The notes below the pieces were generated by a model. That model saw only the letters and a program-made list of their open reading frames with translations. It was not told the DNA's origin and ran no database searches. The position numbers were made by a program, and so were the translations under genes. A stretch of 64,000 nt of DNA from Macrostomum hystrix (lineage: Eukaryota; Animalia; Platyhelminthes), in assembly GCA_950097015.1 (NCBI GenBank), contig CATNEN010000038.1, positions 19,964,001 to 20,028,000 of the forward strand, read 5' to 3'. Positions 1,148 through 59,084 of this stretch are shown here, one piece after another. Each line of letters begins with the position of its first letter. The stretch's first letter is position 1.

Positions 1148-2102
1148 AAAGTAAATATGTCCTGCTGTTGACTTCTATAAATTGCATCTTTGGCCTGCGA
1201 TGCATGTAAATGACCAAAAACTCTATAACACGTTTTCTGAATTTTGAAAGAGTCAATCAAAAGAGGAATTCAATAAAAGTACATAACTAATTGCGACCAG
1301 TTTAAAGTTTTGCCAGATACACAGAGAAGAGAAGATACACAGATACACAGAACAATATCCATACGAGCTTGAGACCAGGTGTTTAGTGCAAGCTGAAATA
1401 TTAGACATTCAAGAGATTCAAGCATATAGATATAATATCTACAAAGCTGAAACTCACTCAGAGTTATCTGTATCCGACATTGTGCTGATGAAGTGCTGAT
1501 GAAATTTAGACCCAGGAAGTTGCTGGGCTTGCCGATTGACTGCCGACAATAAAACAAAAAGGCCAGCTAACAAATCCTGTTTTTATGCTCAGCAACTTTT
1601 ATATTGTTTCCAACTGTTGTACAGTAGATGCATGAAAGCTATCAGCAAGCAATAACAAGATCGGACGATCAGCTATCGGCTAACTTGAAATATTTATCAG
1701 CTGCCAGCTGAGCAACTGCTGTTAGAAGAGAAAATTTACTAAGCTTAGAAACCTGGCCCAGTGATAGATTGAGTCTGGCGCTGAGCAAATTGAGTGCAGC
1801 TTAATAACTGCAGCTTAGCTCTGACTGGTGGAGAGACTTGGTGCGTCAGACCAACAGCCTCCTACCTATCTAGGCACATTTGGCAATTGAAAACCATTTA
1901 GGCTTGTTGCCAGCGCTTTCTATTCATTTCTATAGTGCAGAGATAACGAAAATGAACTCGCTCGCACACACAAAACTATTTAATAGACCGAGCTCTGAGA
2001 AAACTATTTAGTATAGTGGATGGTTGTGCCTGACTGACACATACACAATGAGAAAGTAGTGGCGGTTAGTCTACGATAAGGCACTTATTCAGTTCATTTT
2101 TT

Positions 2103-3530
2103 CTAGATGTTGTTCTGCTCCTCGCTAGACTTTGGAGGTTGAAAGCTCCACTGGGCGTAACTGCCTGCCACACAGACGCTTTTAACTATAGTCTGAGTAG
2201 AAACCTGACAGGTGGAGTGAAACAATTATTACTCACTCCATCTTGGTTTTGGACAACTGGCGCGTGCTTCTGAGATCGATTACGGGGTCTATTTTATGTA
2301 AAGAAATTTGATACTAGAAGGAAGCCTCCAGCTTTCACTGGAGCGTTAAACGTCTTTCTTTGAAGCGTTAAACGTCAGAAGACGGTTCTTTAGCATTAAC
2401 TTTTCAGCCTCACTTTTGTTTCTACTTAAAAAACTAAATAACAAAAAACTAAATAACCTTCTTGAAGTTTGAGAACCTTCTTGAAGTTTGAGAACCTTTC
2501 TGAAGTTTGAGAACCTTCTTGAAGTTTGAGAACCTTTCTGAAGTTTGAGAACCTTCTTGAAGTTTGAGAACCTTTCTGAAGTTTGAGAACCTTCTTGGAG
2601 TTTGAGAACCTTTCTGAAGTTTGAGAACCTTCTTGGAGTTTGAGAACCTTCTTGGAGTTTGAGAACCCTCTTGAAGTTTGAGAACCCTCTTGAAGTTTGA
2701 GAACCCTCTTGAAGTTTGAGAACCTTCCTAAAGTTTGAGAACCTTCTTGGAGTCTGAGAACCTTCTTGGAGTTTGAGAACCTTCTTAAAGTTTGAGAACC
2801 CTCTTGAAGTTTGAGAACCCTCTTGAAGTTTGAGAACCTTCTTGGAGTTTGAGAACCCTCTTGAAGTTTGAGAACTTTCTTGAAGTTTGAGAACCTTCTT
2901 GAAGTTTGAGAACCTTTCTGAAGTTTGAGAACCTTCCTAAAGTTTGAGAACCTTCTTGAAGTTTGAGAACCTTGAGAACCTTGCAAAGTTAAGAATGAAA
3001 AAACATGCAGAACATATTTTGCTTTTTGATTTTCAAACAGAAATATGTACGTACGTTCGATATTTAAAAATTATTTTCAAACGAACAGAGTCGAGAGATT
3101 AATCTCACGTGGTCGGCTTGCTGTAGGTACTGTCGAGGTGCTGGTACAGTGATTTCATCTGAAAACAGTGAGATTACAGATTAGTTTAGGCTAGCGAACG
3201 GATTGCTGTAACAAAAAACTCAAAGTCAAACTGCACTACTAAGAAAGTAGTAATATGAGTTTTTTAGACAGTCACAAAAAGTGTTAAAACAAACAACTTT
3301 CAATCTCATTCTACGCGTTCAGTTGGTACTGACACTCACAACACTTTTGCCTCCGACCGCGCCGGCTCTCTCATCCACCGATCCCCTAGCGTTCTTCAAG
3401 CCCCGGGCCACCTCCGACCAGATGTTGGGCTGGCGCTGGTCCAGCTGCTCCCGGCTGTCCGACATCACTCGGTCGACTGCTCCGCGCAGCCTGGCCAGTG
3501 AGACCTTCGGCGTCTCGGTAGCCGCGGTGG
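2103..3530 (-). CDS. 3' exons of an unidentified protein-coding gene (partial model)
   Basis: Phase-consistent GT-AG exons: 3340-3530 (GC-rich, ATAATETPKVSLARLRGAVDRVMSDSREQLDQRQPNIWSEVARGLKNARGSVDERAGAVGGKSV), 3109-3158 (MKSLYQHLDSTYSKPT), 2237-2288 and 2103-2192 (ends ...SEEQNNI*). No family recognised; 5' exons not located. Confidence 0.45.
2455..2975. repeat. Minisatellite, 19-bp unit (GAAGTTTGAGAACCTTCTT)
   Basis: About 27 tandem copies. Confidence 0.95.
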
Positions 3531-5577
3531 CTAAGTGAAAATCGAAGAGAAACGACAATTAGGTCTCCCAATTTTCCTTCCTATTTCCTACTTATAATTC
3601 TTTCCTTCCGATGAATGTGGGACAACTGACGTCAAATGATGCGACAGTGCCGACAGCTGATACTATTAGTAGTATCCATTGTATTCCTTTCCTATCGGAA
3701 TATTAAGCTCTTCATTATATTCTATAATCTATTGACTAGATCAGCAATTCATATTATTATTTCTGCTCTCCAATTGCTACCTGGTTTATTGCTGTTTTGA
3801 GTTTTAATTGGTAGCTTTTACTTTCATTAATTTCCTGTTTTTCTAATTTCTTCCATTTTTATACCAAGAGGCCCCCCTGAAATTTTTTTGGCAGCGTCTG
3901 AAGGCTAACAGCGTTAGGTGGTGACTGATTGGTTGACAGACTAGGCGATGGTGTATTGTGGTTGAGCTGCGCCTAATATTTTGGCTTGAGCAGTGAAACC
4001 GGAGAAATTCGCGTCAGGGTGTCCATAGTAGCCATTTCCCACTTGTTGTAGCCCTTGAAGGTCCAGCAAATCCGTCTAGATAAAGGTAGGTGACCACCGA
4101 AGACGGAGATGATGCAGGCACACTCGGTTGACATGCAAATAAATATTGAAGGCCTGGCAAGGCCGCACTGAGGCGCAGTGCTAATTTGTGTATTGGGGTG
4201 AATGAAATACTCTAGAGCTTATGGGAAAAATCCGACCTTCGGCCAGAACTTGACTCTTGTTTCAGAAGATGCATGAACAAAAAATTGGCCCTTGTTCTTG
4301 AGTTTCATGTACTTGAATTGCTCTGTTCGGCCGCAGCACAAAAAGTTTTCAGGGGAGAAATCCCTCTTTAGTTGTTCTACTAATAAATATATCATTCAAC
4401 ATAAAAAATAACAGCCTGCATGGTTACATGATGAACTTTTGTGAGCTATTTTGGCTATTTTGGTGGCTTTTCAACGACGAGAATCGTTGAATATATCGAC
4501 GAGCTGAAAGTTGTCGGTCGTGTACTGGATTTTCATGGCGATTGGTGAAATATTTCAGGAGATACAGGAAAAAGAAAAATGGGGTTTTTGAAATACCCAT
4601 TGAGGACTTTCTGCTGTTAACTGAGAATAATGCAGGCTCTTTGCGTATACTAATGATGGCTGAGTTACAAATCAATAAACCTGAGTATAGTACTCACTCA
4701 TGCTGCTGATCAGTCCAATGTAGGCGAATCTTGAACGATTAATAACTGCTACGCTTGTCGCTACCTAGTTCTTAGTTGCTAACGGTATGAAAACGCATCA
4801 ATTTAAACTTTCGCAAAGCATTATGAAAGGATTGTACAGTGGCAATTGGCGCCCACCTTGCTGGCTTGCAGATAAACTGCAGAGCGGCTAATTTAACTGC
4901 TAACACTATTCTGTCGCAGACAAAAATTGACGAGCCCTCGAAAGCAAATGCAGAAGAAAATGGACGTGAGAGAGACTTTGTTGAGTCGCCTCTCACCTCC
5001 TCTCAATGCCTTTGCGCCGTGTGGGCCTTCTCATATCTTTGAAGCAGACTTGAAGTAGATGATTCTAACCTTATATTTGTTCTGGCACCCTGAGAGTCTC
5101 CTACCGTATGTAAGGCTTCGGTTGAGTATTGCTGCGCTCTACACACAAAGTTTTATTGGTGTTTCTCATCCAGCTATTTTTCAACTTGGCTGGATATAAT
5201 TCTCCTAGTTGTATATTGGAGGCGCACTTCTCAAAACAGTGCTCAACACTGCTCAACACTGCTCAAGTATTTTGGTAGGTCGGGCCTCGGCAACTAATTT
5301 GTTATGAGTTGCTGTGTGCCTTACACAAGGCTGAAACTACGCAGTACACCATTGTCTGCTGCATGGAGTTCGTCTTTAGACCCCACTGTTCTTACAATGG
5401 TTAATGTGCGACTTCGTTTAATTAATGCCAGTGTCTAAGTGCGCTGTTTCATTATTCGCATTAATTCTTCTACGGCCGTGTACCACTCATTGTTATCTTC
5501 AAAGATTGGCGATAGACAAAGTTGAAATGCTTGCTATAAGTCAATTATTAATTGACTAATTTAGTAGTCCGTGGTAT

Positions 5578-12470: not shown

Positions 12471-14272
12471 AGCTAATCAAAGGAAGTCTGGAATTCTGAC
12501 ATCCTGTTAAAAGACAGTTCCTTGCTTCCTTCGTTCGAAGTATCTGAAATCTAGTCCGAGTATATTTCCTGACAAGTGATTTTACTTTCTGACTCAAAAA
12601 CTGGAGCAGATGGCGAGTATACAGACTATTGATGAACAACTTGCTCAAGAATGTAGTTCGCATAGCGTAAGCTAAAAATCAAGCATGCAGGATCTCTTGA
12701 CAGCAATTTAATTAACAAACCTTCGTGACCAAAGGACTGCGTCGTCAGTTGCCATGCGCCTGATTTAGTTGATTGCTAGCTGCAAGCATGGTACCTCGTG
12801 CAGCTCTGATCAGTTTGGCTGCTTCAAAGCTCGTCTCTTGACTGGCCAATTTTTACCTTTCGTGTTCAGACAGATTAGGCTAATGCCTTAGCTCAGCGAA
12901 TTACAGTTTCGAGGAGGGGGGTTGGCTCCTGTCACGGATTGGCTGACGGGACCCTTTTACAAACCATCTAAGTCAAAGTCTCATTAAGGCCATGCGAGCG
13001 ATGCTCTTATCTGCATGCGTGTGCGCCAAGATTAATTGGCTTCCTCTGTGCCTGTATGCTCAGGAGCAGCTTTCGCCGATGTCTGCAGTCGAGTCGGAAT
13101 CGCGTAAAAAATTTACCAAAGCGAGTAGTACGCTCCCTTTTAGGACTGTCATTTTTTCTTCGGATCTTAGCTAAGGCGGCTGCTGCGACTGCTGCAACCA
13201 CTTGGGAGTTGGATGCTGAATCCGTGATGAAGCGCTTGCAAGCTTAACAAAAAATAAATTATAAGGAACTCAAATAAGTTAGTTACAAGGTTTCGTATAA
13301 CCACGCAGGTACCTGTACCCGACCAAGAGTTAGTAGAAAGTTGCAGGCAGCGTTAGTTTTTTTAACTGCGACCAAATTTTTTCAAAGAATATTTTATTTT
13401 TATAACTTTCGTCAGAAGATTGTCAGAAAATTATAGTTGAACAATAGAATAATAACGATTTTCTGGTTGATAAAATCAGACAGGAACAATTATAAAGTAA
13501 GCATTCAGAACACGACGTTGATCGTGTGGGCGGATATAGAAAATTCTAGAGAACAATGACTTGGCTTAATATTTGCAGTGCTTTCTTGATTTGGTCAGAG
13601 CTTTTTTCATGGGACCCAGCAGAACTTGAATGTTCATTCGAGAAATGTATTCTGGCTAACATCACACTGAAATACTGAATGATTCGTATATTTCATCGCT
13701 GAAAAGAACAGTTTTGTTTAATTGGTTATAATAAAATAATTGTCTGCTAAAAATGGATAAATTAAATTAATTACTAAAAAAGCAATCAACGTTGTAAAAT
13801 TATCAATTCTAGCAAGGGAACATAGCTCGTACTATACAATACTTTTCGTAATAAAACGCGAGTATACATTCGTTGAGCGAAAGTCGTTTATAAAATTTAA
13901 GACGTGTTTTGTGACAGATCATTTTAGCAGTGACCGCGCATGAAAAGTTGAGCCTTGAAATCAAAGAATATGTGACCTATACTTGGTCATGCTGCGAGTA
14001 GCTTGTACCGTAGTCTAGTGGTTAAAGCTCGGGACTTCTGACTGAAATTTCGGGAATTTAAATCACAGTAAGTACCATCAGCAGCCAGAAGCTATTTTTG
14101 GCAGGCTCGTTAATGCGCTCGATCTGTTTCATTTGATTGAGCAAATCTCAACGAAAGTTTGATATTCCAGAGCCTTCTACTCAGAGTAGTAGAAAAGTAC
14201 TTTTAATTATTTAAGCTCAGAAAGTTGAAAAAATGTTGACCGCAATAACTTGAATCATCAACCAATCAAGCA

Positions 14273-17200
14273 TCATTTTGACCTCTTGAACTTCCTGTCG
14301 CTGGCGCCGATCTCGCACAGCTGCAGCACCTTCGCTGGGGTCAGCGGCAGCTCGAAAGTCAGGTTCAAATCCGGCTTGCCCTGCTGCTTCCGGAAGGCCT
14401 CGACCGCTCGCTTGATGGCGGTGACGCATGTGGCAGAGAGGCCGAGCGGCGGCTCCCCGATGGCCTTGGTGCTGAAGACGCTGTCGGTGTCTCCCGGCTT
14501 CTTCAGCAGGTGGACACGGAAGTCGCGCGGCACGTCCGCAGCCTGCGGCGGCTTGTAGTTCCAGGTGCCATCGGCCAGGTTGCGGCCGGTGTCGGAGTCG
14601 TAGACTGTCCTCTCGGTCAGGTAGTAGCCCATGCCGAACACGTAGGCGCCCTCGATCTGGCCGATGTCAACGCCGGGGTTCAGGCTCTTGCCAATGTCCA
14701 TCATGATGTCCGAGCGCAGGACGATGTACTCGCCTGTAAGGACGTCCAGCTCAACCTCTGCGGCGCCAACGCCAATGGAGGCGTAGCGGGCGTGATTGCC
14801 TTCTCGGTTCTTCGAGGTGTAGCTGCATATGCATTTTTGGAGGAAATCGAGCTACTGATATTCTTGTCTTAAAAAAACTTGTTGCAGCCATCGCTTGGTA
14901 CTTACGTGCCGAATGCTTTCAGCAGCACGCCGGACATGATGGCGGTCACCACCAGCTCATTCCAGCCAGCGTCCGGCTTCTTCTCCTTGAACGGCAGCAG
15001 GCGCTCCTTGATCTGATCGGCAGCTACCTTGGCAGCCATGGCGTTCAGCTCGCTGGTGGAGCTGCCACCGGTGCCATCCATCTGGGGCAGCATCATGCTG
15101 TCAGTCGGCTTGGCCTTGACCATGTCCAGTGTGGCGCCAAACTCAGCCAGCTGAGCCACAGCAGCTTGAGCAACCTTGGTTGTGAGGCCCTGGCCCATCT
15201 CCGCGCCGCTGTGGACTAGGCTGATGGTGCCATCCATGTGAACTGTCAGGTCAACCTCAGAAGGCCCGAATCTCTGATAGCTGATGTGGTACGAAATGGC
15301 TGACATGTCCAGGCCGCGCTTCTTGTAACGGTTTTCCTAAGCGAGAAATTTAATTTTTAATTCCATAAGTTTCAACTTTAAAACCTTCAAAAAAACAATT
15401 GTTTCTTGCTATATCAAGGTGGATTTAGTCCATATTCACCTTGTTGAACTTTTCGATCTCTCTGCGACGCTTCTCAATGTTGGCCTCGTCGTAGAGTTCG
15501 TCCCACATTCGCGACAGATTGTTGTCCGCGCGCTCCATTCCATGCTGGTCGATCTGGCATTGGGTCATACGAGACATCAGACATTAGGGATGAAGTTCAC
15601 CAAAGAACCTACGGCTCAACCGGGGGATGAGTGGCAGAGCGGTTAACGAGTTTGCCTCTCGCCCCAAGGTCCCTGGGTTCGATTTTGTTGCGAGGCCACA
15701 TTTATTTCGGGTACAGCCGCGGAGAGAAGGCTTGGCGGCTTGTCGTGCAATTTACGCCCTTGAGGGCCAGCCTCCAAGACACAGTGAAAGTGTACACTGC
15801 CTGACGATGAGAAAGGCAGGGCAGATGAACACCGCTGTGCGACTGTGTGCCTGCGTAAAATATCTGTGTGCGGGTGTGCTCAGGAGTCAGTGAAATGGGC
15901 AGAATTGCCTCCTCGCCAGCCGCGGGTCTAGTGTCACCAAATTATGTGCCATTGCCCGCTGTCCACCTGCTGTTATTATTATTATTAACGGTTCAACTGT
16001 AGAGACGACATTGAATTCAGCCGAGCTGCAAACAGGGCAAGTTCACAAACCTGGCCAGCCCGGTAAAGATTCTTTCGCTTGAACTCAATGGGGTCCATCT
16101 TGAGCGCGTGAGCCAAGTGATCCATCATGAGCAGATTGAAAATGGCAGCCGGCGCAGCGCCAGGCGACCTGACCGCGGTGGCCTGCGGCTTGTTGGACTT
16201 CAGATAGGTGAGGTCCCGCTTGTAGGTGTCAGAATGGTAGGCCTGGTCCAGAGAGTCGTCCATCTCGCGACCAATCAAGGTAATGAAGTTGCAATTGTGA
16301 CCAGCATCTAGGGCGGAGTCCCAGTGGACACTGCGCACATTGCCGTCCTTGTCGGCTCCCGCCTTGTAATTCGCGATCACCATGGGCCGCTTCTGTCCGC
16401 CTTGGGCGAACTTGTCCAGTCGCAGGTACATGCGACAGGGGCGGCGAGTGATGTCACACGCGATGGCGCACACAGCAATCACATGATCGACCTGCATTCA
16501 AAGTAATATGCACACCTGAGAGAGATTCAAACTCGCTATGTGCATACTATTTCCCTGTTGCGAATACTTGTACAAGCTGAAAACTTAAGCCGGATTATAA
16601 GCTAAAAACTCGAAATCTCGTTTCGTCGTTTCTTCGAAAACATAATTTTCAAAATTAAAAACAACTTTAAAACGACTAAACTACTTTCAACTGTTTGAAA
16701 ATGTTAAGCTAAACATCTCTAATTGGGCCGTTAAATTTGATGAAATTTTAGGCATAAATTTTTGGATCCAAGTCCAGTGGGGACAGATTCTGACTTCTGG
16801 TCAGGAGTTCGAGCCTCAGCCACCCAAAATATAATATGGGTGGGTGTAGCGGCCTCCGTCAGTCCATGGACTGATTAACAGCAGTACACAGCATTTTGTG
16901 ACATCTGGTGGAACTGGTCTAGACGTAATTCCAATTTACCTTAAAACACAGAACGTAGTAGATCTAACTCACCATCAACATTTTGCCACCAAAGCCGCCA
17001 CCAATGCGTGGACTGATGGCCCGGAACTGGTTCCTTGGACGGCGCATTACTTTGGACAGCATCACCGTGACGCCTTCAATCCACTGGTGCGGCGCGTGCA
17101 CGAGGAAGCCCTCCTCAGTCAACCGGACGCTCGCAGTCAAAGATTCAAGGAAGAAGTGCATCTGCTCTCCCACGGCTACTTCGCCTTCGATTTGGACAGG

Positions 17201-20200
17201 CTGTTTGGCCAGAGCCTCGTCGGCGTTCTCTTTCGAAGCGCGCTGGGCGTCCTTGAAGTGAATGGACTTCTTGGCGATTGCCTCCGTGATGTGCACGATT
17301 GGCTCGGCATCTCCGGCTTCAAACTGGACCTCGACAAGGCTGGCGGCCCGATCTGCGGCCCACTGCGACTCGGCGAGTACCACAGCCAATGGCTGGCCAG
17401 CGAAGCCGACTGTTGAAGATGGAAAGATCTCATCGGTTTGCCTGTGAAATGAGAGGCACGTTTGGCGGTGACCGTGAACTCTTGCCGCAGAAGTGGTTAT
17501 TAACACATGGATGTACTTTTGTATTTATGTACTTTCGTATTTATGTACTTTCGTATGGATGTTTCGTATGGATGTACTTTCGTATTTATGTACTTTCGTA
17601 TGGATGTTTCGTATGGATGTACTTTCCTATGGATGTTCTTTCCTATGGATGTACTTTCCTATGGATGTACTTTCCTATGGATGTACTTTCCTATGGATGT
17701 ACTTTCCTATGGATGTACTTTCGTATGGATGTACTTACAGCTCTGGTGGGAAGATGGGCAAAGTCGTATTGTTAGTGTATTTTCCCTCCAAGTCCTTTAG
17801 AGTGATCATACTGTGATAGCCTGGCACTTTCTGAAGTAAAAACGGAAAAGTGCTAGACAGTGGGTCTTTTTTGAAACTACAAAAAATAATGATTAACGAA
17901 CCTCGGCTTCTTCAGTCTCAAAGCCAGTGACCTTGATGGCCGCTTCAGGAGCCACAACATAGGACAGGAACAGCTCGTTGGCGTGGGCGGGGAAATCGTT
18001 GACGTAGGTGGCCTCGCCGGATGTCTGCGCCTTCGACTCGAGCTTCCTGACCGACTGGCCCAGCGGCGCCGGCTGAAGCACCTCTTCGAAGTCCTGTTCA
18101 CCACGCTGCAGAGGCCGCGTCAGAACTGGGCCGCCTGAGCGAGCGGCGCCCTCCACTGCATCGCTGCCGATGTCCAAGATGGCCTTGTAGAGAAGGTTCA
18201 CGGCCAGCTGGCGACGGTGCTCCGGCGAACTAGCCGTCGCTTCCTCCACCGGCACAACCTCCGACTCCAGCACCTTCAGTGCGGCTAAAATGTTACGTTT
18301 CTTTAATGTTTTTCTTGAAAAATATTGACGCAAAATTATTCTAAAGGGCCACTTACACTGAACGACTTCTTCATCCAGTAGACTCTTGTTGAGCAGAAAA
18401 TTCTCTGTTTTAATGGCGTGGTTCTAAAAGAAAGTGTGTCTCATTTATCTAGTGATAATAAACGAATGATTTAAATCAAGCACAAGTGACCTAAATTTCA
18501 ATCTCTAGGACTCACAAATTTGTCCGAAATTCCACCAATCAGGATGCTAGGCCGCTCTGTCACTTGGTAGTTTCTCTTCTTATCCACCGCAATTTGGAAG
18601 GCTCCGTTGACATAGGCGTGCGCGTTCTGGAATATATTTAGAACTAAGATGCATACACACTACTGATTTGATTGGGTAAGGAAATATAATGCGAGTATTA
18701 AATAATGATTTTTATCTAGCGTAAACAGGTTCAACTGAGCTGTGACCCCGAGCATCGATAAGACGCTGGACTTAGAGATTTGGACTTAGTTATTATTATT
18801 GTTATCTGATTCCAAGCAAAAATGTTCGCCTCAAGGCCACAAATAATCACTGAAGTAAAATACGTTACTGTATCGTTTTTATAAGTTTCTTTCTTAGCTG
18901 AGCTCTTTTAGCGAATCTCACCAGCTGCCGAGGCGTGATCTTGAAGGACCGGTAGAAGTGCTGGTCCGTCGAGATGGCGGGCAGCTTGGCTGACACGATC
19001 ACCTTGCCCCGCATGTCCAGCCTCAGAAAATCGGTCAGCACGTGATCCTGAGTGCCCTGGTCATCCGCAACCCTGATGACAGTCTTGGCAGCCTCCAGCG
19101 TGATGAACACATCCGATGGGAAGTCCTGGTGGCTGTGCTTCATCATGAGGTTTCCGGCCCAGGAGGCGTTCGCGCGGACGGCCTGGTTGGCCACCTGCTG
19201 GTAGTGGTCACTGATTCTGTCGAGATGGGCCAAGCCGGGCACCTTCGCAGCGGCCTCCTTAAAAGTGTCGATCAGCTCGCGCAGAGTCACCGTGGCGCCA
19301 ATCTCCAGGCCTGACTTGCTCAGCTGCAGCGAGTGTCAGGTGTTGAGAAGATTTTGAGCTCATTGTCACTAGCTCTGCGATGTACTCTTTAGTGACTCAC
19401 CTTGATGCTGTGCAGCTCGGGCACGTTGCGAACGTTGATGAAGCAGTTCACGAGGACGTCCTCTTTGAAGACTCCGGCGGAGGTGTTGCCGCACAACAGC
19501 TGGTAGTCGTCGTCCTTGTAGCGCTTGAGCAGCTTGAGCAGCTGGTCCAGGCTGCCCGGGTTGTAGAAGCGCTGGCCCTTCCAACCTCGAGCGATCGGGA
19601 TCACGCCGGATGTGGGCGGCTTCAGGATGTTCTCAGCGCACAGGCTCTGGTTCATTTCCTGCCGCGGTAGCATGAGCAGCTCAGCGAGTTACATTTGAGC
19701 TGTCTGGAATTGAAGGGCTTTAACACTAGTCCGGTCCACTCACCTCAATGTCGACGCATTTTCCATTCTTGGAGTCGCAGGCGAACGACTTCATGCCGTC
19801 GAGAATGGACCTGTAGCCGGTGCAGCGGCAGATGTTGCCGTCGAAGAAATGCTCAACCTGCTGCATTGTGGGCTTCTGGTTCTCCTGCAGCTGGCTGTAC
19901 ATGCTCATGACGAAGCCGGGAGAGCAGAAGCCGCACTGGGTGCCGTAGTGCTCGGCCAGCCGCTCTTGAATCGGATGGTAGGGCTTGCCGCTGCCTCCGA
20001 TGCCCTCGATGGTGGTGATGTGCCAGCCCACGGCCGAGTAGACCGGGCACAGGCACTAGAAAAAAGATAACTTGTAGGTTTTTCATACTGATTGGCTTAG
20101 CTCCGAGTTGCTCATTTCTATAATTCGGGACTCACAGAGTTGACAGGCACTGAGACCACTTCCTCTGTTGCCGGGTGCTTGTAGGTGGCCGTGACAACGC

Positions 20201-20450
20201 AGCAACCGCAGCCGCCCTCTCTGCACATCACCTTTGTGCCTTTGAGATTAAGCACTTCTCGTAGGAACTCATTCAGACTCGTCTCCGGGTTGCAGTCCCG
20301 AGGAACTAAGAGATTTCAATGCATCCTTTAAATGTACACAGCTTACACTTAACTGACTAAAACTACTAAAAAGGACTTACTTTCGATGCCTTTTCCATTC
20401 ACGAAAACGATTGGTTCACCGCTTGACGGTGAAATACCTCCAGAATACAT
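14273..20450 (-). CDS. Molybdo-flavoenzyme of the xanthine dehydrogenase/aldehyde oxidase family, aldehyde-oxidase-like (~1289 aa)
   Basis: 14 phase-consistent exons: 20381-20450, 20136-20305, 19744-20055, 19401-19658, 18922-19323, 18516-18626, 18357-18423, 17902-18284, 17739-17830, 16973-17441, 16051-16491, 15440-15553, 14906-15336, 14273-14822. Motifs: 2Fe-2S (CREGGCGCC, TQCGFCSPGF, GNICRCTGYR); FAD region (RANASWAGN, NAHAYVN); Moco (QMHFFLE, GGGFGGK, EMGQGL, DIGQIEGA, KAIGEPPL). Confidence 0.95.
15620..15985 (+). mobile_element. SINE family A, near full-length, intronic
   Basis: A box TGGCAGAGCGG, B box GGTTCGATT, (TTA)n tail. Confidence 0.9.
16790..16890 (+). mobile_element. SINE family B fragment
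   Basis: GGGTGGGTGT..CAGTCCATGGACTGA shared with family B 3' end. Confidence 0.55.
17507..17735. repeat. Minisatellite, ~16-bp unit (TATGGATGTACTTTCC), intronic
   Basis: Tandem copies abutting the splice donor at 17738. Confidence 0.95.
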
Positions 20451-21477
20451 TCTTGACGCCTACAAGAAAAGCTTTGGAAAAGCCAAGTTCTTTCACAAGA
20501 ATAGTTTGACCGATCGGTGAACTCAGCACCTTGTCTTGGTTGTTGACTATATACATGCATCGTTAATCAGGGCCACTATACTCTAGCCAATGCTATCGGA
20601 CTGTGGCCTCAAGCGCCCACTCAAAGTCGATCAAATCTCAGATAAGATCTCATTGCTAAATAAAACCGATTGTACAGCCGTTCCGATAAATCGCTGCAGA
20701 GAATTTCTTGGTTCTGCAGCTAGCCCCTGCTATCTCTTCTAAGCTCCTAATCTAAGGGGCAAATTCAGCTGCAAAATTACCTAAACTGGTTTTGTTTAGT
20801 GGTCTCACCTGTCTCACTCTCCTGTTCACTTATGCGGCGATATTATCGGCTTCACCTAAGCAACTTAAACTGATTAGTTTGCTTTGCTTGCACAGAAAAA
20901 TCTGCTCGGAAAAATATTTTGCGAGGCTTCTGACTTCTGATCTCCTTATCTGACAAGTTAACCGAACAAAGTTGCAATTTGTAACTACCTGGGCAGGTAT
21001 AATTTGTGGCCTTGCTGTATCGTTTGATGCTGTAAATCAATCGCGCCAATTGTACGAACTGATTTTAATCTCAAACATGTATTGCGTACTTTAAGATAAT
21101 AGAGTTTCGTAAGAAGAAGTCACCAAATGTTTATTTCAGTGCAAAAATATCTGAAAATGTATATTTTAGTAGCGCTAATCTACGAGCGTATAATACGAGT
21201 GTAAATAGTCATTGTCGTATTATCAGATAATCTGAATATATATATTTATAACTCACAGTGTTTTATTCAAAGTTATGCTCGTTAATACTTGATATGATAA
21301 TCAAAGGCTACAATTAGTTACATTTTCAGAAGTATTGACAGTTTTAGAAAGGTAACAATGGTCACAAAATACAGATCAATTTATATAATTTATTGAATAA
21401 ATAAATTTTGGGCGATTTCAAATCTTGTACGTCGAAAGTTTTTGTATCCATTTATTGTTTTCATATAGCATGACGTA

Positions 21478-21670
21478 CGGTACAAGACGAACGTATGGTA
21501 CAAGACGAACGTGTGGTACAAGACGAACGTGTGGTACAAGAGGAACGTGTAGTACAAGACGAGCGTGTGGTACAAGATGAACATGTAGTAAAAGACGAGC
21601 GTGTGGTACAAGACGAACGTGAGGTACAAGACGAGCGGTACAAGACGAACGTCTGGTACAGGACGAACGT
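21478..21670. repeat. 18-bp tandem repeat (GTGGTACAAGACGAACGT) in the predicted 3'UTR of the iGluR-like gene
   Basis: About 11 copies between the stop codon (21692) and a minus-strand AATAAA (~21451-21456). Confidence 0.9.
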
Positions 21671-21691
21671 CCGGAACTTCGCGCAAATAGC

Positions 21692-24600
21692 CTAGTCTTC
21701 ATCCTCGTCCACCACACGATTCCTCTGCTCCTGCACCCACTCGCTGTTCTCAAACAGTCTGGCAAAAATGCGGTTCTGTGTGGCGCTGTCCTTGCCAAAG
21801 TACTGCACTTGAATTTTCTGTCGCATCTTTAAGTTTAGACTTTTAGCCGTCTTGATCTGCAATGATATTTTTGCAAAACTCGCGTTATTCAATAGCGATA
21901 TGCTAAAGCAAAATAATCAAGACTCACCTTTGTGGGATCCGAGTGCAAACTGTTGTTAGCAATGAAGAATACTTCCTGTCTACCTTCTATCTTCACCCAG
22001 ACGCCCTCCTTGGTAACCTTGATTATCTCGGCCTCGTAGCTTTGGCCGTACTTCAAATCTATCCTGCTTCTGCGCCTGGCCAATAAGAGACTCACCTTCC
22101 TGTACATCCAGTGCAGGATTATGTACAGGAATCCCAGAATAGACCCGATGCCAACTGCCGCAAATAGGCCGGCGAAATAGCTAAAGCTCAGCGGCGTCTT
22201 ATCCGAAGGATTGATCACAGTCGTTGGGCAGCGGTTCAGCCCAAAGTACTTCTTCTCCAGGTTCTGGTAGTCTGAGTAGCGTATGGAGCTCAGGTAAGCC
22301 CTCACCTCGGCCTTGAATGGATAACTTTTGCTCATCATCGTGGTCTCGTAGACAACATCCTCTAGGGGACCGTAGGTCTTCAACCCGCAGTCTTTTGTCT
22401 TCTCATAGTTGACAACTGTGGCTGAGTCGATGTACACGTAATGATCCTTGGACTTCAGCAGCTGAATGGCGCCCGCAGTTGTTGACTGGACCATCTCTGA
22501 CGGCCAACCAGCCTGCGCCAGCTTAATCAGTCCAGGCCAGCGCTTCTGCACCGTTGAGTAAGAAATCGAGTTGTTCAGGAAAATTGCTCGATAGGATGTT
22601 GCATTCTGTAGCTCGGCAATTGTGGTAAATGGCACCGTTTCGTCTGGCTTCACCAGAAATGGAACCAAGTTACTAACGTAGGTTGTCATGTAGAAAAGCG
22701 TCGAGAACCACAGTAGCAATGTGAACAGACGAGCCGAAGGCTTTCGCGGCTCCGTCTCCACTTTGGACATGAGAAACGAACTCAGCACCAGGAAGAATGA
22801 CCCCATGAAGGTGAACATGCTTTTTTCACTTTTGTTCGGACTGATTTTATCGCTGACGAACAGAGTAACAGACAGCACAACCATTGAGAACACGATGCTA
22901 ATCCAAACGTACCAGGAAAACGGGTAGAAAACATTGAAAAAGTCCAGCTGATGAATGGTTCTCTTCAGCAGCATGATAACGCCGGACTGTACCAAGTTTA
23001 CCGTGCTCTCCGCATCTTGAAGCCGGTCCGCCACTGCGAACATGAAATTGGCGGAGATGTCCGCTTTCTAGAATGACAAAAACAGTGTGAGACAAATTAG
23101 TTAATGACATTTCATAAACTATGCCCGAATTCGCCACTAAACTCTAAAAACACGAGTGAAAAATTGTTAAATGGTTCAAGTACGGTTATTAGTACACGAG
23201 TAAACGACACAGTTTGAAACCCTTTGACTGCGGCCATAGACATTTTCAAGCGGTGTGCCTGCAGTGCCTGTGCCAGCAGGACGGAGCTTGTAATGCTTAG
23301 TGCACCAACTTTTGCTAATATTTTTGCCGATAACCAACAACCTCAAATTTGTAGTTAATACTCAATGCTCACATTCTGAGTCAGATATCCCATGATGCCA
23401 GTCCAGTTACCATCTGACCGTTTAGACCCGTACTGGCCGTCCTCGACAAACAGGATTTCGTATTGGAACTTGAGATTTTTCTGCATCAACTGAATCAGAT
23501 CGTAGCTGATTCCAGTTAGATCTCCGTTTAAATTGCGGTAAATGTACGGCTGGTCCTGAAGTAAGAGTTGTTGCTTTTTTAGCGACACTGTGTCATGGTG
23601 AAAAAGCCAGTCGTATCCTTACCAAGACCGCTGCGAATCTCACTAGCGAGTTCTGAATAGTTGTAGTTTTAAAATAGTCCACCTTGTAGGCAGGTGTGCT
23701 ATTTTGTACCCAGGTTCCAGCTTTAACTAGAAAGTCATTCTCTGGCCTCGATCGATCTGTGGTCATTACGCTCACTGATAGATCCTGCCGGATGCCATTT
23801 CGGTAGGCGAAGTATCCACTTTCGGCGTTGATAGATGTCTGAAAAAAGCAGAGAAAATTCTGCTCGAAATGGGCATCAGAGGGCTCGAATGCTATGTTGA
23901 CTTTGCTCGGGTAATTGAGGGTGGGTGTGGTGTCCCCAAGTCCATGGACTGAACAGCCGTACGCAGCCTTCAGATGGGACGAGCAATAGCTGCGCCTGTG
24001 CTGTCTAAAGCACATCTGACCCAGTTGTGGTATGATTTCAACTTACAGCGAGCAGTCCCATCACCAGAGTATAGTTGACTCGCGCCCTGCAAGTAGCGAT
24101 GGAGGCCACGAAGTGAAGAAAACAGTCCTTCAGGAAAACTTTCTGCAGCTGCGTATCGTTGTATCTCTCTAGCCTAGCCAGCGAGAAGGTATAAATGATG
24201 GCCGAGCTTCTGCGCACGTTTGCTAGATATTTCTGCTTTTCGTCCTGCAGTTTTGGATTATTAAATTTATCGCTTACTTTCCGAATCCTTAACAGTAGAG
24301 AGACCACGATATTTCCCGCCTCTATGAAAAACAACGGGGATATTTCAAATATCCACTGCCTACTTCACGACAGTTCCCAAACCGAATGATGCCGAATATG
24401 TTTTTTTATTCTTAAAGTTGTCTCATCAGACAGAGCGAAAAATTTTGCTTGTGTTTTGCATTTTCATGGCGTCTGATTGGTTGAATATTTTAGGAGATAC
24501 AGAAAAAATGTGGGTACCCCGTTGTCTTTCTGCTGTTAGTTGTTTTATTCGATTTACTGGTTGTGTACCTTGCAGTGAATCGGAAGGGTTTATAGGGTTG

Positions 24601-26863
24601 TGGTTAAAAATGTTATGCGTAATATTTTCGCGTACCAAACTTGGCAGGATGAATATGTCCTGGTCGCTAAGCGCCCCAGCTGGTCCGCTCTGGAAGTTAC
24701 CATAAACTTAATTTGAATTATTTATGACTCCGACCAGCTGTTTTACACACTATTTTACTGTGATTAATCAGTCACCTGATTGAATATCCTGTCAACCTGG
24801 TTCATGTTCTCCGGCCTGTACACTAGCACCCAGCTGTGAGAGGTCAGCAGGTCGCGATCGCTGACCAAAGCCGCGAAGATCTCCTTGTCGGTGGTGCTGG
24901 CGTTGATGACACGCTGGGTGAAGATTTTGCCGACGACATTGGATGTGAAGTGACTGCTGGCTATATTGTGTGGTGATAGGCAAAGAGATTTAATATTTGC
25001 GGCCTAGCTCACAGATTTCGTGGGTCGGTCTGAGACGCAGCTAAAAGGTGGCTTATGGCTTTTTTTATTCGCTGCTAAACAATGAGAAGGTCAAAGCAAT
25101 CTACACCCTCATATTGCCTCCTCACTGGCTGCAAAGATACCTACTTCAGTTCAAAGATACCAAATAAATTTTTGCTCTTATAACTCACGATATTATCTGT
25201 CCAACTGAGTTTATAATTCACAAATGTATAAATTAAAAATCTGGAGACATACCGATAGTACCATCAGTGAAGATGGTGTAGCCCTGTCTTTGCAGTGCCG
25301 TATTTAGATCAAACAGTGTACCGTTCAGTTGGTTATGATCAATCTGATACTGGAACATCTGAGGCTGGTACTCGTAGGGTGAGTACTCCCTGTCGCCGCT
25401 AATGAAGTACGGTATGCCATTACTGAAGGTGACAACAGCCACGCTCAGGTAATAATCTGCCACCACAGCGGAGATTCCGCGACTGAGTAATTCGCTTTCA
25501 ACTGAAAAATAGGTTTTTCTTCGTTGAAAATAATCCTTCTTGAATCCATGATCAATAGGAACAGCCTAATTAATCCTAAACGAAAAAAGACCTTACACCA
25601 AGACACATAACACGACAGAAATTAACAAAAGCTCTGTGCATAACACTGCCAAGATTATGGAACTTTAAAACGAGTACTTTATTTCCACAGAAGGTTGATT
25701 TTCCCCTGCATACTTTATAGGGATCCAGTACGCTTAATCTTTCGATTATTAACGACAGAATGTTTACAGTTTTTATCAGGACATATTGACGATATTGACG
25801 AAAATAATGTGAAGTTTTGCCATAGATATAATAGCGCTTAGGATATCCTTTTCTGTACGCGAAGTCAACTGAGAATGGTGTTCTATGGTCAAAGCTGTCG
25901 TTTCGCTCGTCATAGAATAACTTTATTAGGGACATGCAATAGGATGACCGATTAATGGAGAGACAGAGAGAGGCTTAACTAAAAGGCATCGTTAAATTCT
26001 TAAATACACCTTGTTCATACAATCGATGAAATGGTGGTGCGAGATAGCAGGACTCGAAAACGAAACAGCGACAATGACAAGACTAAATAAAACTGCTCGA
26101 TGGACTAAAATGCGTGGAAATGTTTTTAAACATAAATGTACTTACGAGGTCCCATCATTTCGGGCAGTGAAAACAACGGCTGAATTGGAAAATAGGTGAA
26201 ATTGAAGGAAAATTGTCGACCCGACGCGTTAAAAAGCTGATTGCGAATCGACGTCAGAAAGTTGAAGGTGTCGATGTTTTCGACAGCTGAAACGACGTGT
26301 TTAAAGAGCATGCATATATGATTTTCTTAGTTCCATTTTATATTTGTTTGCCGAGCAGTGAATTTGGTATCAGCATTAGCTGGTGAAGAGTAACATTTTA
26401 AAGCAATGCGATTAAGAAGTATTAGCTGCGACTGTGCCAATGGGACTATCTATCTACTCGTATATATAAGTACGCTTTGCCCGCTGTACACTTCACTGTG
26501 CCTTGGAGGTTGGCCATCAAGGGCGTAAATTGCACGACAAGCCCCCAAGCCTTCTCTCCGCGGCTGCGCCCCAAATGAACGTGGCCTCGCCGCGGAATCG
26601 AACTCAGGGACCCTTGTTGCGACAGGCGAACGCGTTAACCACTCTGCCACCGACCCCCATATATTCATGCACTCTCTAATTGAGGTACAGTTTAGCTCGT
26701 AATTCCCGGAGACAGAAGGTCCCAAAATCTTACCAACATGATAGAAGTTCGACCCGCACGTTCTCTGTGCCCTCTGGGCGTCGGCTTCTAGTGGCCATTG
26801 CGACGACACGAGAGCCAGCAGGAAGAGCAGTTGGCTCAGCCTCGATGTAGAAGCGGATGCCAT
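21692..26863 (-). CDS. Divergent ionotropic glutamate receptor / IR-like channel with a C-terminal PNPase-like S1 RNA-binding domain (~934 aa)
   Basis: Exons 26734-26863 (signal peptide), 26146-26286, 25253-25501, 24776-24960, 24569-24689 (least certain), 24047-24321, 23623-23838, 23373-23555, 21928-23067, 21692-21856. iGluR motifs: GISYDLI, DGQYG..GNWTGIMG, KADI..R, M1 FYPFSWYVW, PRKPSAR, M3 TYVSNLVPFL, LEKKYF..C, M4 FAGLFAAVGIG. The tail resembles the PNPT1 S1 domain. Confidence 0.9.
23908..24005 (+). mobile_element. SINE family B 3' fragment, intronic
   Basis: GGTAATTGAGGGTGGGTGTGG..GTCCATGGACTGAACAGCCGTACGCAGCCTTCAGATG, near-identical to 11812-11900. Confidence 0.8.
26484..26658 (-). mobile_element. 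SINE family A, 5' part, in intron 1 of the iGluR-like gene
   Basis: tRNA head and 5' body match the consensus. Confidence 0.85.
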
Positions 26864-27319
26864 CACGATGCGGCACGACTCGTTTGAGTTTCGCGTTTCG
26901 AGTTTTGAGCTCGTCTTGTCTCAAGAGTTTTCTAGCCAAAAAATGTAAAGCACTGACTAATATTTACTGCAAACACAAGTCTACCCCCGAGCTTTCTGTG
27001 GACTTGTTCTCCTTATTGTATTGAATTCAATCTTTGCACATGCAGTCCATCTCTTCATCTCTGTCTTCTCTTCCAATTGTTATTTTCTTCGAAGCTTTTG
27101 TTTGAACTGAGTACAGTTGGGCAAAATTTTTAAGTCTTCGCACTGGGCAGACCCTCTTAAGACCTAGCTGAGTCCGCTGGTGTGAGCATAGACTCAAATA
27201 CTTCTCTGCCTTGCGGCCCAATGAGTAAATTTAAGAGATAAAAGCGGAGACTACTGGGGATAGACGAGGTGTTGAGGGTGACACAGTGACAGACAGGTAT
27301 GAGATTGGATGGGTAGAGA

Positions 27320-27835
27320 AGAGACACAGGGAGAGATGAGACGCAGGGAGAGATGAGACACTGGGAGAGATGAGACACAGAGAGAGATGAGACACAGGGA
27401 GAGATGAGACGCTGGGAGAGATGAGACACAGAGAGAGATGAGACACAGGGAGAGATGAGACGCTGGGAGAGATGAGACATAGGGAGAGAGAAGACAAAGG
27501 GAGAGATAAGACACGGGGAGAGATGAGACACAGGGAGAGATGAGACACAGGGAGAGATGAGACATAGGAAGAGATAAGACACGGGGAGAGATGAGACACA
27601 GGGAGAGATGAGACACAGGGAGAGATGAGACGCTGGGAGAGATGAGACGCTGGGAGAGATGAGACGCTGGGAGAGATGAGACGCTGGGAGAGATGAGACG
27701 CTGGGAGAGATGAGACGCTGGGAGAGATGAGACACAGGGAGAGATGAGACGCTGGGAGAGATGAGACGCTGGGAGAGATGAGACGCTGGGAGAGATGAGA
27801 TGCTGGAAGAGATGAGACACAGGGAGAGATGAGAC
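27320..27835. repeat. Minisatellite, 17-bp unit (GGGAGAGATGAGACGCT/ACACA)
   Basis: Tandem array; reverse-complement relative of 320-1147. Confidence 0.95.
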
Positions 27836-28263
27836 AGTCTGCTGCTTGTTGCATCTTTAGGCTAAGAAAAATTTTTATTGACTTGTCTACAATAGATTGC
27901 AGTTGATGACTTTAGCGCTGTTTATTTTTCAGTCACTTGAAAAGATGTCAAGAAACGAAACTATTAGCACTATAGGTCTACTGTCAGTAAAGTGGCTTGT
28001 TTTTGTATCTTTAAACTGTCTTGAGTTAATTTTTTTGTTTTACTCGTGATTTCGTAGCCAATCGCCATTTAGCTGAATTCCTATTGGCTGCTAGATATGC
28101 GTGCATTCAGATTTGGCTAATGCAATATAGTCATTATACATTTAAGGCTTTTTAAGACAGGACTTACAGTCAGCCCTCCAAGGACACTTGGCAGTCATTC
28201 AGGAAGTCATAATTGGTAAATCAGTTCGCTTTCGTGAAGCAAACTACTCAAAGTTGAGATCGC

Positions 28264-47607
<19,344 letters not shown>

Positions 47608-58677: not shown

Positions 58678-59084
58678 TTTTATTGACAACACTTTCAAGT
58701 ATTTTAAGAATAAACTTTTGTTGTCGCTAAAAATTAAAAAAAGAAAACAGTTAAAAACTAGTCTAGCGAATGCTTTCTACCGTTTATATCGTTATCAATT
58801 AAATTTACAAGCTTTCACGTTGCCTATCTAAATTTCTAATGGTTTAGAAAAACTGGGCGTATCTCGTAAAGTCACGAAAATTTACCTAGACTGAGATTAC
58901 TGAACGTACTCGAACGGGCTCAACTGGTATTTCTGAACCAGCTGTGTTTGAACCCAGACTCTGAAAGTTTACGAGTACGGTTTTTTGCCTGTCTAATCTT
59001 CTACTCTCAACTGACAAAAATCATCTTATTTTCAATTCTTATTGTTCAAAAATACCAATTTTCTTTTCCTTTCTTTTCCTCTTT

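Follow-up and report, generated by a model that had tools for sequence, protein, structure and literature searches.

An ionotropic glutamate receptor gene, probably AMPA/kainate-like, of the flatworm Macrostomum hystrix with a predicted S1-type OB-fold cytoplasmic tail

Gene organization and transcript evidence

The window, i.e. the whole analysed stretch of 64,000 nucleotides from Macrostomum hystrix (assembly GCA_950097015.1, contig CATNEN010000038.1, positions 19,964,001 to 20,028,000), carries on its minus strand one real, transcribed gene of ten exons and about 886 codons (see Table 1), the product of which is an ionotropic glutamate receptor (iGluR) subunit, probably AMPA/kainate-like, with a predicted S1-type OB-fold cytoplasmic tail. 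In the translation, the first ATG is located in exon 1 at positions 26863-26861, and the N-terminus (MASASTSRLSQLLFLLALVSS...) resembles a signal peptide as judged by eye. Scans of the gene region with Rfam and for tRNA genes gave no matches.

Table 1. Positions of the gene, its exons and the encoded protein features within the window (LBD, ligand-binding domain; the S1 lobe of the LBD is a lobe name and distinct from the S1 RNA-binding fold)
Feature	Position	Strand	Remarks and evidence
Exon 1	26734..26948	minus	5'UTR and start of coding sequence; contigs X3/X4, listing of open reading frames, translation
Exon 2	26146..26286	minus	amino-terminal domain region; joints 26286>26734 and 25501>26146, CT..AC ends; open frame
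Exon 3	25253..25501	minus	amino-terminal domain region; transcript contigs, open frame
Exon 4	24776..24960	minus	transcript contigs; joint 24960>25253 present also in run X2
Exon 5	24636..24689	minus	transcript contigs; boundary moved by 1, giving a GT..AG intron
Exon 6	24047..24244	minus	transcript contigs, translation
Exon 7	23623..23838	minus	transcript contigs; joint of exons 7 and 8 also in runs X1 and X2 (second study)
Exon 8	23373..23555	minus	S1 lobe of the LBD
Exon 9	21928..23067	minus	1140 nt, 380 codons; uninterrupted in the transcript contigs
Lig_chan domain, M1 through M4	22144..22917	minus	Pfam PF00060
M4 transmembrane helix FSYFAGLFAAVGIGSILGFLYIILHWMY	22102..22185	minus	alignment to M4 of GluA2; helix in the model of an ortholog
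Basic linker RKVSLLLARRRSR	22063..22101	minus	holds an unused GTGAGT donor look-alike (22095-22090)
S1 fold, first half (strands 1-3) IDLKYGQSYEAEIIKVTKEGVWVKIEGRQEVFFIANNSLHSDPTK	21928..22062	minus	Pfam S1 below cut-off, tail HMM of the family
Intron 9	21857..21927	minus	71 nt, GTGAGT..TTGCAG, phase 0; splits the S1 fold
S1 fold, second half (strands 4-5) IKTAKSLNLKMRQKIQVQYFGKDSATQNRIFARLFE	21749..21856	minus	weak PDB match, tail HMM of the family
Acidic C-terminal extension NSEWVQEQRNRVVDEDED and TAG stop (21694-21692)	21692..21748	minus	translation
3'UTR	21275..21691	minus	contig X3 extends to 21275

Besides the remainder of the LBD, M1, the pore loop, M3, the S2 lobe, M4 and the linker, the long exon 9 encodes the first S1 half. 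Translation of positions 21928-22800 of the minus strand runs from M4 through RKVSLLLARRRSR into IDLKYGQSYEAEIIKVTKEGVWVKIEGRQEVFFIANNSLHSDPTK as an open frame without any stop codon, and translation of positions 21680-21856 yields IKTAKSLNLKMRQKIQVQYFGKDSATQNRIFARLFENSEWVQEQRNRVVDEDED followed by the stop. The spliced contigs of the runs X3 (3163 nt) and X4 (3071 nt) matched the gene with 0 mismatches and with all of the nine introns removed; they read through the M4/S1 junction down to the stop and skip exactly the positions of intron 9, this part of the transcript evidence comprising two runs of one study and assembled contigs, which lose rare isoforms. Other introns of the gene are covered by the spliced contigs of a second study (runs X1 and X2). 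The original prediction of a receptor reading frame that continues past M4 and a basic linker into an S1 domain, interrupted there by a 71-nt phase-0 GT-AG intron, was thus borne out by the open translation, the splice sites and the contigs that join M4 to both S1 exons; as it had also maintained, these are not two neighbouring genes, the contigs representing one gene with one mRNA. Loss of the tail through the cryptic donor of the linker was considered as well and rejected for the major transcript, no such joint being present in X3 or X4. The 3'UTR holds an 18-nt tandem repeat at positions 21479-21670 (10.9 copies, TRF).

The receptor part of the protein

The identity of the channel part was evident from both profile and structure database comparisons: The Pfam profile Lig_chan matched with E=2e-21 (76.7 bits, cut-off 30.8), and exon 8 matched Lig_chan-Glu_bd (PF10613) with E=3e-12 (47.1 bits, cut-off 30). 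Comparison of exon 9 with the PDB gave an alignment to GluA2 that spans M1 through M4 (E=1.5e-19), with GluN1 scoring close behind; it stops where M4 ends, and the iGluR chains of solved structure among the matches listed did not align past this helix either. The best PDB matches of the whole-length family profile were GluK3, GluK2 and GluA2 (8e-57 for GluK3, 2e-54 for GluA2), a comparison that is dominated by iGluRs and uninformative on the tail.

The flatworm gene has the domain order in common with the AMPA/kainate receptors GluA2 and GluK2/GluK3 (amino-terminal domain, two-lobe LBD, M1, pore loop, M3, M4), with the S1 lobe of the LBD positioned before M1 and the S2 lobe between M3 and M4. 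The S2 lobe could be aligned to that of GluA2, the cysteine pair being kept and the position of GluA2 E705 being occupied by D. In contrast, the gate motif of M3 is recognisable but divergent (TYVSNLVPF versus SYTANLAAF, 5 of 9 residues identical), and the Q/R position is occupied by Ser. A further difference concerns the region behind M4: Whereas the cytoplasmic C-terminal tails of iGluRs are normally disordered, protein-docking regions, the usual disordered tail is replaced in the flatworm gene by a predicted folded S1 OB domain, which begins about 13-20 residues after M4. Since the tail follows M4, the established iGluR topology would place it on the cytoplasmic side.

Sequence, predicted fold and conservation of the S1-type tail

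The Pfam S1 profile (PF00575) matched the first half of the tail with E=0.0018 and 19.1 bits (cut-off 22), whereby only the profile positions 3-40 of 74 could match in this single-exon comparison. The ortholog P0001 reached 14.7 bits, which is likewise below the gathering score, and the family members P0003, P0004, P0007 and P0009 gave no match; altogether, the gathering threshold was attained by none of the window exons and none of nine family proteins. Because Pfam S1 stays below its threshold, the tail is considered a divergent S1-type fold and not a Pfam-defined member. In contrast, a tail-only HMM built from the relatives outside Macrostomum recovered the two halves separately among 1979 ORF pieces (first half E=2e-12, second half E=1e-8), and by this measure, the similarity of the window's tail to the tail family is well above chance.

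Judged by sequence similarity, the S1 module appears closest to that of animal polynucleotide phosphorylase (PNPase, PNPT1), as originally predicted. The phmmer comparison of P0009 with the PDB placed the S1 domain of human PNPT1 first over the whole domain (residues 630-733, E=9.9e-4), and human PNPT1 (residues 674-700) was also the top, though weak, match of the coding part of the window's exon 10 (E=0.9); the link to PNPT1 rests on these two values. The exon with the first half of the tail gave only marginal PDB matches when used alone, PNPT1 not being among them, and PNPT1 was also absent among the best 60 PDB matches listed for P0007. A search of the ESM Atlas with the tail provided a weak lead to S1 clusters (score 0.90). 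The motifs FGxVY, GVxV, NxxL and (I/V)xVKYFGxD are common to P0009 and PNPT1. However, the strand-3 histidine of PNPT1 ("LLH") is aligned to Ala in the window's protein, and the position is variable across the family; the missing conservation of this residue would be compatible with an RNA-binding surface that has been altered or lost.

The fold was assessed by AlphaFold2 modeling of two database relatives of the window's protein, with an alignment of nine sequences. For both members, the models of the tail (pLDDT of 85-91 for P0009 and 72-85 for P0001) revealed the order strand-strand-strand-short helix-strand-strand of a five-strand OB fold (strands at residues 192-201, 204-209, 216-219, 243-248 and 261-264 in P0009 and at 692-700, 704-709, 715-719, 743-751 and 758-762 in P0001, with a helical turn after the third strand in each), and the acidic C-terminal end is modeled in an ortholog as a short helix following the OB fold. 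Among the top 50 Foldseek matches almost all were S1 domains (probability 1.00, E-values of 4.4e-5 to 5e-3), and structural alignment of two independent models with VIA-align gave Z-scores of 8-10.2 at an rmsd of 2.1-3.4 Å over 74-80 residues, the partners being S1 domains of PNPase, bS1, RNase R, Tex and aIF2-alpha. The assignment of the tail to the S1-type OB folds, as anticipated in the original prediction, is supported by these models.

The modeled tail resembles the S1 domains of PNPase (human PNPT1; E. coli PNPase, 1sro; KH-S1, 6qh2) in its five-strand OB fold and its length of about 75-80 residues, with Z-scores of 10.2 to 6qh2 and 7.8-8.0 to 1sro. Comparable values (Z 8-9.9, rmsd 2.4-3.4 Å) were obtained for the S1 domains of bS1, RNase E, RNase R, Tex, eIF2-alpha, DHX8 and the exosome subunits Rrp4/Rrp40/Csl4, and the structure searches do not separate the PNPase S1 domain from the others. 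Elsewhere, S1 domains typically occur in proteins that handle RNA, PNPase being one of them; to our knowledge, the S1 proteins listed here all handle RNA and are either soluble or bound to the ribosome or to a complex, and none of these domains resides in an integral membrane channel. Unlike PNPase, the flatworm protein contains neither RNase PH domains nor a KH domain and lacks the catalytic parts of PNPase altogether, and its S1 module is tethered to the membrane behind a channel helix and does not conserve the strand-3 histidine of PNPT1. Indeed, the Pfam domains of PNPase (RNase PH, alpha-helical, KH) had no matches in the gene, and everything upstream of the tail is of iGluR type; the protein is therefore not a PNPase. 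In the genome as a whole, the PNPase profile TIGR03591 gave S1 matches in other genes only, PF03726 had no match, and PF01138 matched scattered loci, the small number of which would be compatible with exosome RNase PH subunits.

Within the genome, the search for further paralogs revealed two tail-bearing genes only: the window gene and a paralog on another contig (L002, contig C3), which likewise possesses the tail with a phase-0 intron at the matching position and ends with the PDZ ligand-like C-terminus -ESV. A search of 1.84 billion proteins returned 12 matches, in most of which the alignment continues through the tail. The architecture is thus present in M. lignano (A0A1I8HFD1 and BOX15_Mlig009170g3, direct orthologs of the window gene with an identical exon join; PAA92080.1, ortholog of the paralog) and in the cestodes Schistocephalus solidus (A0A0X3NVQ4), Rodentolepis nana (A0A0R3T0I6) and Hymenolepis weldensis (KAM3179252.1); five further database proteins bear the tail, too. 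P0013 was rejected as a tail-bearing member, as it is an M1-M3 fragment without tail. Searches with the tails of P0001 and P0004 and with the whole of P0003 returned, apart from the queries themselves, a single M. lignano protein.

In the M. lignano ortholog P0016 (881 aa), the two exon halves are joined identically at DPTK|IKTAK (residues 827|828). This protein is 82% identical to the window's over exon 9 and 83-87% over the tail; compared with M. lignano, 39 of the 45 residues of the first S1 half and 45 of the 54 residues encoded by exon 10 are identical. When distant members are compared, identity is higher in the tail than in the channel core (41 versus 24%, 38 versus 23% and 30 versus 19%), which argues that the tail contributes to the working of the protein and must do something important; the S1 tail is thus probably functional. 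As the fusion is common to the two paralogs of M. hystrix, to M. lignano and to tapeworms, it must be old. That the architecture is real and under selection is regarded as nearly certain.

Proposed role of the tail and alternative explanations

The best explanation overall, to which a probability of roughly 55% is assigned, is an iGluR with an S1 tail, the basic face of which holds RNA at the receptor. Given the topology of iGluRs and their assembly as tetramers, up to four S1 modules would be suspended directly below the pore, facing the cytoplasm. Their face, the net charge of the S1 tail being positive in most members, might bind single-stranded RNA or an RNA-protein particle and hold it at the receptor, by which receptor location or activity would become linked to the local handling of RNA; the acidic C-terminus may cover this basic face. 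For RNA as the ligand of the tail, taken by itself, the odds appear to lie somewhat below even. More tentative still is the extended proposal of a neurotransmitter-gated channel with a built-in RNA-binding domain that tethers specific mRNAs or RNA-protein particles, the position of the receptor and perhaps its activity (via the acidic tail or the ion flux) controlling local RNA storage, translation or decay. An ion channel that itself contains an RNA-binding domain is not known to us; an RNA-binding iGluR may therefore be the first example.

Among the alternatives, a real architecture with the S1 fold turned into a module for protein-protein contacts, without RNA binding (for trafficking, scaffold docking or as an intracellular assembly layer under the tetramer) fares best, even though it is considered rather unlikely. 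Protein contacts, too, can be mediated by S1 and OB folds, and the C-terminal tails of iGluRs are established docking sites for proteins; the loss of the histidine found in PNPT1 and many other S1 domains, the surface divergence indicated by the sub-threshold Pfam S1 scores and the PDZ ligand-like end of the paralog would all be consistent with such a module. In contrast, the positive net charge in most members, the retained aromatic residues of strands 2 and 3 (GVWV, FF) and the YFGxD...R motif common with PNPT1 point away from it, and we know of no partner protein of the S1 tail.

It is improbable that the ligand is instead a different polyanion or some component of the membrane (acidic phospholipids, polyphosphate or single-stranded DNA) and that the tail acts as a gating or anchoring element near the inner leaflet. 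The short distance between the net basic domain and the membrane, bridged by the basic linker, would suit this function, and OB folds bind varied oligomeric ligands; however, the closest sequence and structure matches were all RNA-binding S1 domains, and no S1-class lipid binder is known to us. An artefact, i.e. read-through into a nearby S1 gene fragment or pseudo-exon or an error of assembly or prediction without any functional fusion protein, might be suspected from the donor look-alike in the linker and from the single study of assembled contigs behind intron 9, but is close to refuted by the position of the first S1 half in the exon and frame of M4, the mismatch-free read-through, the recurrence of architecture and intron phase in the paralog and of the architecture in M. 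lignano and cestodes, and the superior conservation of the tail between distant members.

The preferred reading of an RNA-holding receptor tail would provide a direct physical link from a ligand-gated channel or synaptic receptor to RNA localisation or translation, processes that neurons otherwise connect to channels via many adaptor proteins; if the tail binds protein, it would clearly exemplify the co-option of an S1 fold from an enzyme of RNA degradation. M. lignano is experimentally tractable, with established methods for RNAi, transgenesis and in situ hybridisation. A predicted folded module of an RNA-binding class that follows shortly after M4 and is retained in macrostomid flatworms and tapeworms alike is an iGluR architecture for which the literature search found no description, nor any paper on the database members. 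The originally presumed novelty therefore holds for the literature, but not for the databases, in which predicted proteins of this architecture were already deposited without remark. Their labels read "PBPe domain-containing" or "hypothetical" or, in the case of Schistocephalus, wrongly "Polyribonucleotide nucleotidyltransferase 1"; given the lack of PNPase domains upstream of the tail, the latter is a misnomer and exposes an annotation error, an iGluR being named PNPase in UniProt. The cestode members may, as lineage-specific features of a channel, be of interest to parasitologists.

Transcript structure and channel part of the window gene

Re-translation of window 21928-22800 (minus strand) reproduced exactly the coordinates and sequence originally predicted for an open reading frame running from M4 into an S1 domain: the S2 lobe is followed by the M4 helix FSYFAGLFAAVGIGSILGFLYIILHWMY and a basic linker (RKVSLLLARRRSR), from which the frame stays open without a stop into IDLKYGQSYEAEIIKVTKEGVWVKIEGRQEVFFIANNSLHSDPTK; past a phase-0 intron of 71 nt (GTGAGT...TTGCAG on the minus strand) it resumes as IKTAKSLNLKMRQKIQVQYFGKDSATQNRIFARLFENSEWVQEQRNRVVDEDED and ends in a stop codon. 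In a run search, four sequencing runs of one study covered 90% of the sequence words, and two runs of a second study contained small shares. Over 21100-26950, the transcript contigs of runs X3 (one contig, 3163 nt) and X4 (one contig, 3071 nt) aligned without mismatches and with nine skips each; all skips had CT..AC ends (GT..AG on the minus strand), and the contigs thus represent spliced mRNA (see table). The 71-nt intron is precisely the last of the segments skipped, the junctions joining M4 to both S1 halves are present with the introns removed, and the first S1 half lies with the transmembrane domains in a single exon, as the original prediction had held. All exons are open in the phase demanded by their lengths, which sum up to 886 codons from the first ATG (26863). 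In the second study, intron 7 was spliced in the contigs of runs X1 and X2 and intron 3 in X2 too; exon 10 was also covered by an X1 contig with one synonymous difference. The splice evidence over intron 9 consists of assembled contigs from one study, which rare isoforms could escape. A GTGAGT look-alike in the linker (22095-22090), considered as splice donor, was unused in the contigs.

Features of the window gene and its surroundings (window positions)
Feature	Position	Strand	Remarks
Exon 1	26948-26734	-	contigs X3/X4
Exon 2	26286-26146	-	contigs X3/X4
Exon 3	25501-25253	-	contigs X3/X4
Exon 4	24960-24776	-	contigs X3/X4
Exon 5	24689-24636	-	contigs X3/X4
Exon 6	24244-24047	-	contigs X3/X4
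Exon 7	23838-23623	-	contigs X3/X4
Exon 8	23555-23373	-	contigs X3/X4
Exon 9	23067-21928	-	1140 nt, single piece in contigs; ligand-binding domain, M1-M4, first S1 half
Intron 9	21857-21927	-	71 nt, phase 0
Exon 10	21856-21275	-	contigs X3/X4
3'UTR repeat	21479-21670		18-nt unit
Intron sequence	26392-26640		high depth
Intron sequence	23844-24039		high depth
Intron sequence	24236-24480		high depth
Neighbour gene	~14250-20260	-	multi-exon
Array	300-1150
Array	2455-2973
Array	27315-29227
Array	30100-36830		(ATCT)x227 at 33097-34003
Array	39856-43478		(TTTCTCA)x173 at 39856-41107
Array	51844-54510
Array	59084-59576

The window sequence was searched exon by exon: exon 8 matched Pfam Lig_chan-Glu_bd (E=3e-12) and exon 9 Lig_chan (E=2e-21). 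The alignment of exon 9 with GluA2 extends from M1 through the end of M4 (E=1.5e-19) and ends at residue 323-328 of 380, so that at least the last 52 residues lack a counterpart among the listed iGluR chains of solved structure. The family profile retrieved GluK3 (8e-57) and GluA2 (2e-54) from the PDB, and the S2-lobe cysteine pair is present without exception within the family. In contrast to GluA2, the gate motif is divergent (TYVSNLVPF versus SYTANLAAF), Ser occupies the Q/R position, and the residue aligned with the ligand-binding Glu705 is Asp. A weak match to type-I periplasmic-binding folds (Z 7.2-7.5) was obtained for residues 138-349 of the modelled M. lignano ortholog, which would fit an amino-terminal domain.

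Fold, relatives and conservation of the tail

Pfam S1 remained below its cut-off of 22 everywhere (19.1 bits for a half domain, 14.7 bits for the M. lignano ortholog P0001). AlphaFold2 models were calculated for two relatives of the window protein, P0009 and P0001, from a nine-sequence family alignment: the P0009 tail comprises three strands, a helical turn and two strands (pLDDT 85-91), and that of P0001 has the same topology (pLDDT 72-85), with a long helix running on from M4 in front of it. Foldseek matches in the PDB were nearly all S1 domains (Tex, bS1, RNase E, PNPase KH-S1, DHX8, human PNPase), and in VIA-align both models reached Z values of 8-10.2 (rmsd 2.1-3.4 Å, 74-80 residues aligned) within a set of 48,161 representative chains. 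Together, predicted topology and structural matches make an S1-type OB fold well supported. The originally proposed PNPase character has no more than moderate support: the reading that fits best at present is an origin from PNPase in particular, with the human PNPT1 S1 domain as first PDB match of P0009 (E=9.9e-4, entire domain, above every iGluR) and, weakly, of window exon 10 alone (E=0.9). A PNPase core was not detected in the whole genome by exon-wise profile search with TIGR03591, which matched just S1 domains of other genes, or PF03726, which matched none; the scattered PF01138 matches are few enough that they may represent the RNase PH subunits of the exosome. Either this flatworm lacks PNPT1 or has a very divergent one, or the gene was missed by the exon-wise search; its apparent absence deserves attention because the iGluR tail looks PNPT1-derived.

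When the 150 C-terminal residues of both exon-9 equivalents were searched against 1.84 billion representative proteins, 12 matches were obtained, most of them aligned through the tail, with both S1 halves joined in the protein sequences. They include Macrostomum lignano P0001 ("PBPe domain-containing protein") and P0002 ("hypothetical protein", PAA92080.1), Hymenolepis weldensis P0005 ("hypothetical protein", KAM3179252.1), Rodentolepis nana P0006 ("unnamed protein product"/"PBPe domain-containing protein") and, from Logan or ENA contigs without database name, P0003, P0007, P0009, P0010 and P0012. Schistocephalus solidus P0004 is an iGluR with S1 tail; its UniRef name "Polyribonucleotide nucleotidyltransferase 1" is a misnomer, evidently owing to that tail. 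P0006 (1263 aa) contains two iGluR units in a row, each followed by S1-tail sequence, and probably represents two tandem genes fused by the predictor. At 881 aa, M. lignano P0016 is a full-length ortholog; it shares 82% identity with exon 9, with 39/45 identical residues in the first S1 half and 45/54 in the coding part of exon 10; its junction DPTK|IKTAK (residues 827|828) is the same join as in the window transcript. The architecture thus recurs in M. lignano and cestodes. Macrostomorpha and Cestoda are widely separated within the flatworms, and by parsimony the fusion would have arisen in an early flatworm ancestor.

A tail-only HMM of non-Macrostomum members (M4 excluded), run against 1979 ORF pieces, matched window exon 9 (E=2e-12, profile positions 2-45) and exon 10 (E=1e-8, positions 34-77), the next match outside the gene having E=1.6. 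In distant member pairs the M1-M4 core is less conserved than the tail (tail versus core identity: P0001-P0003, 41% versus 24%; P0001-P0004, 38% versus 23%; P0003-P0004, 30% versus 19%), a pattern expected from purifying selection on the tail and not from decaying read-through sequence.

The same 42-contig genome of 220,453,370 bases also contains a paralog (locus L002, contig C3) that shares the exon design: its M1-M4 exon extends into ...KLGHEYLAEVLDAKPDGVYFRINGENEVRFMNNSCLGEDV, followed by a phase-0 intron of ~365 nt at the same position in S1 and an exon encoding ...LKGRIIQVRYLGKCSINNNAKIFVR... with the C-terminus -ESV. No tail-bearing genes beyond these two were found in this genome. The paralog's end ...DSDEESV (L002:947-1132, minus strand) resembles a class-I PDZ-binding end; that of the window gene is acidic (...VVDEDED; M. 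lignano counterpart, ...VVDSDSD). With such unlike C-termini, the two proteins may dock differently.

Full-text literature searches gave no description of an iGluR with S1, OB-fold or PNPT1 domain, including Platyhelminthes, Macrostomum and the M. lignano gene, in agreement with the earlier statement that no such architecture was known to have been described; the window gene encodes an iGluR whose cytoplasmic domain is novel, and predicted proteins of this kind are public but unremarked.

Possible function of the tail

A single mRNA encodes, in one reading frame, an old and constrained S1-type folded module that follows M4. As the post-M4 tail of iGluRs is cytoplasmic and the receptors assemble as tetramers, as many as four S1 modules could lie directly under the membrane. 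Lys and Arg outnumber Asp and Glu in the S1 part of most members, the aromatics on strands 2 and 3 (GVWV, FF) are retained, and the YFGxD...R motif is common to tail and PNPT1. Judging from these sequence features, the net-basic S1 might bind single-stranded RNA or RNP and keep it at the receptor (probability about 0.4), and the acidic end VVDEDED might mask its basic face. The main rival, an S1 fold co-opted for protein docking or assembly, is favoured by the lack of conservation of the histidine aligned with PNPT1's LLH and is somewhat less likely than RNA binding; binding of a polyanion or lipid by the tail is improbable. An artefactual fusion is highly implausible in view of the spliced contigs.

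Surroundings of the gene

A tandem repeat with a unit of 18 nt, GGTACAAGACGAACGTGT (10.9 copies, 83% matches), occurs in the 3'UTR and could be a regulatory or protein-binding mRNA array or one more of the genome's many minisatellites. At three intron positions the contigs' summed depth was ~400 to 5000 versus ~34 for the gene transcript, with many variants and loose ends: these sequences in introns 1, 5 and 6 are dispersed high-copy repeats, many copies of which are transcribed or abundant. Scans of the gene region including the intron repeats gave neither a tRNA nor an Rfam match. The downstream neighbour belongs to the xanthine dehydrogenase/aldehyde oxidase family (Pfam Fer2_2, 1.4e-29; FAD_binding_5, 1.1e-8; Ald_Xan_dh_C, 8.2e-9; MoCoBD_1, 1.3e-16; MoCoBD_2, 1.9e-18). 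Long minisatellite and microsatellite arrays with a strong strand composition skew are unusually abundant in the window.
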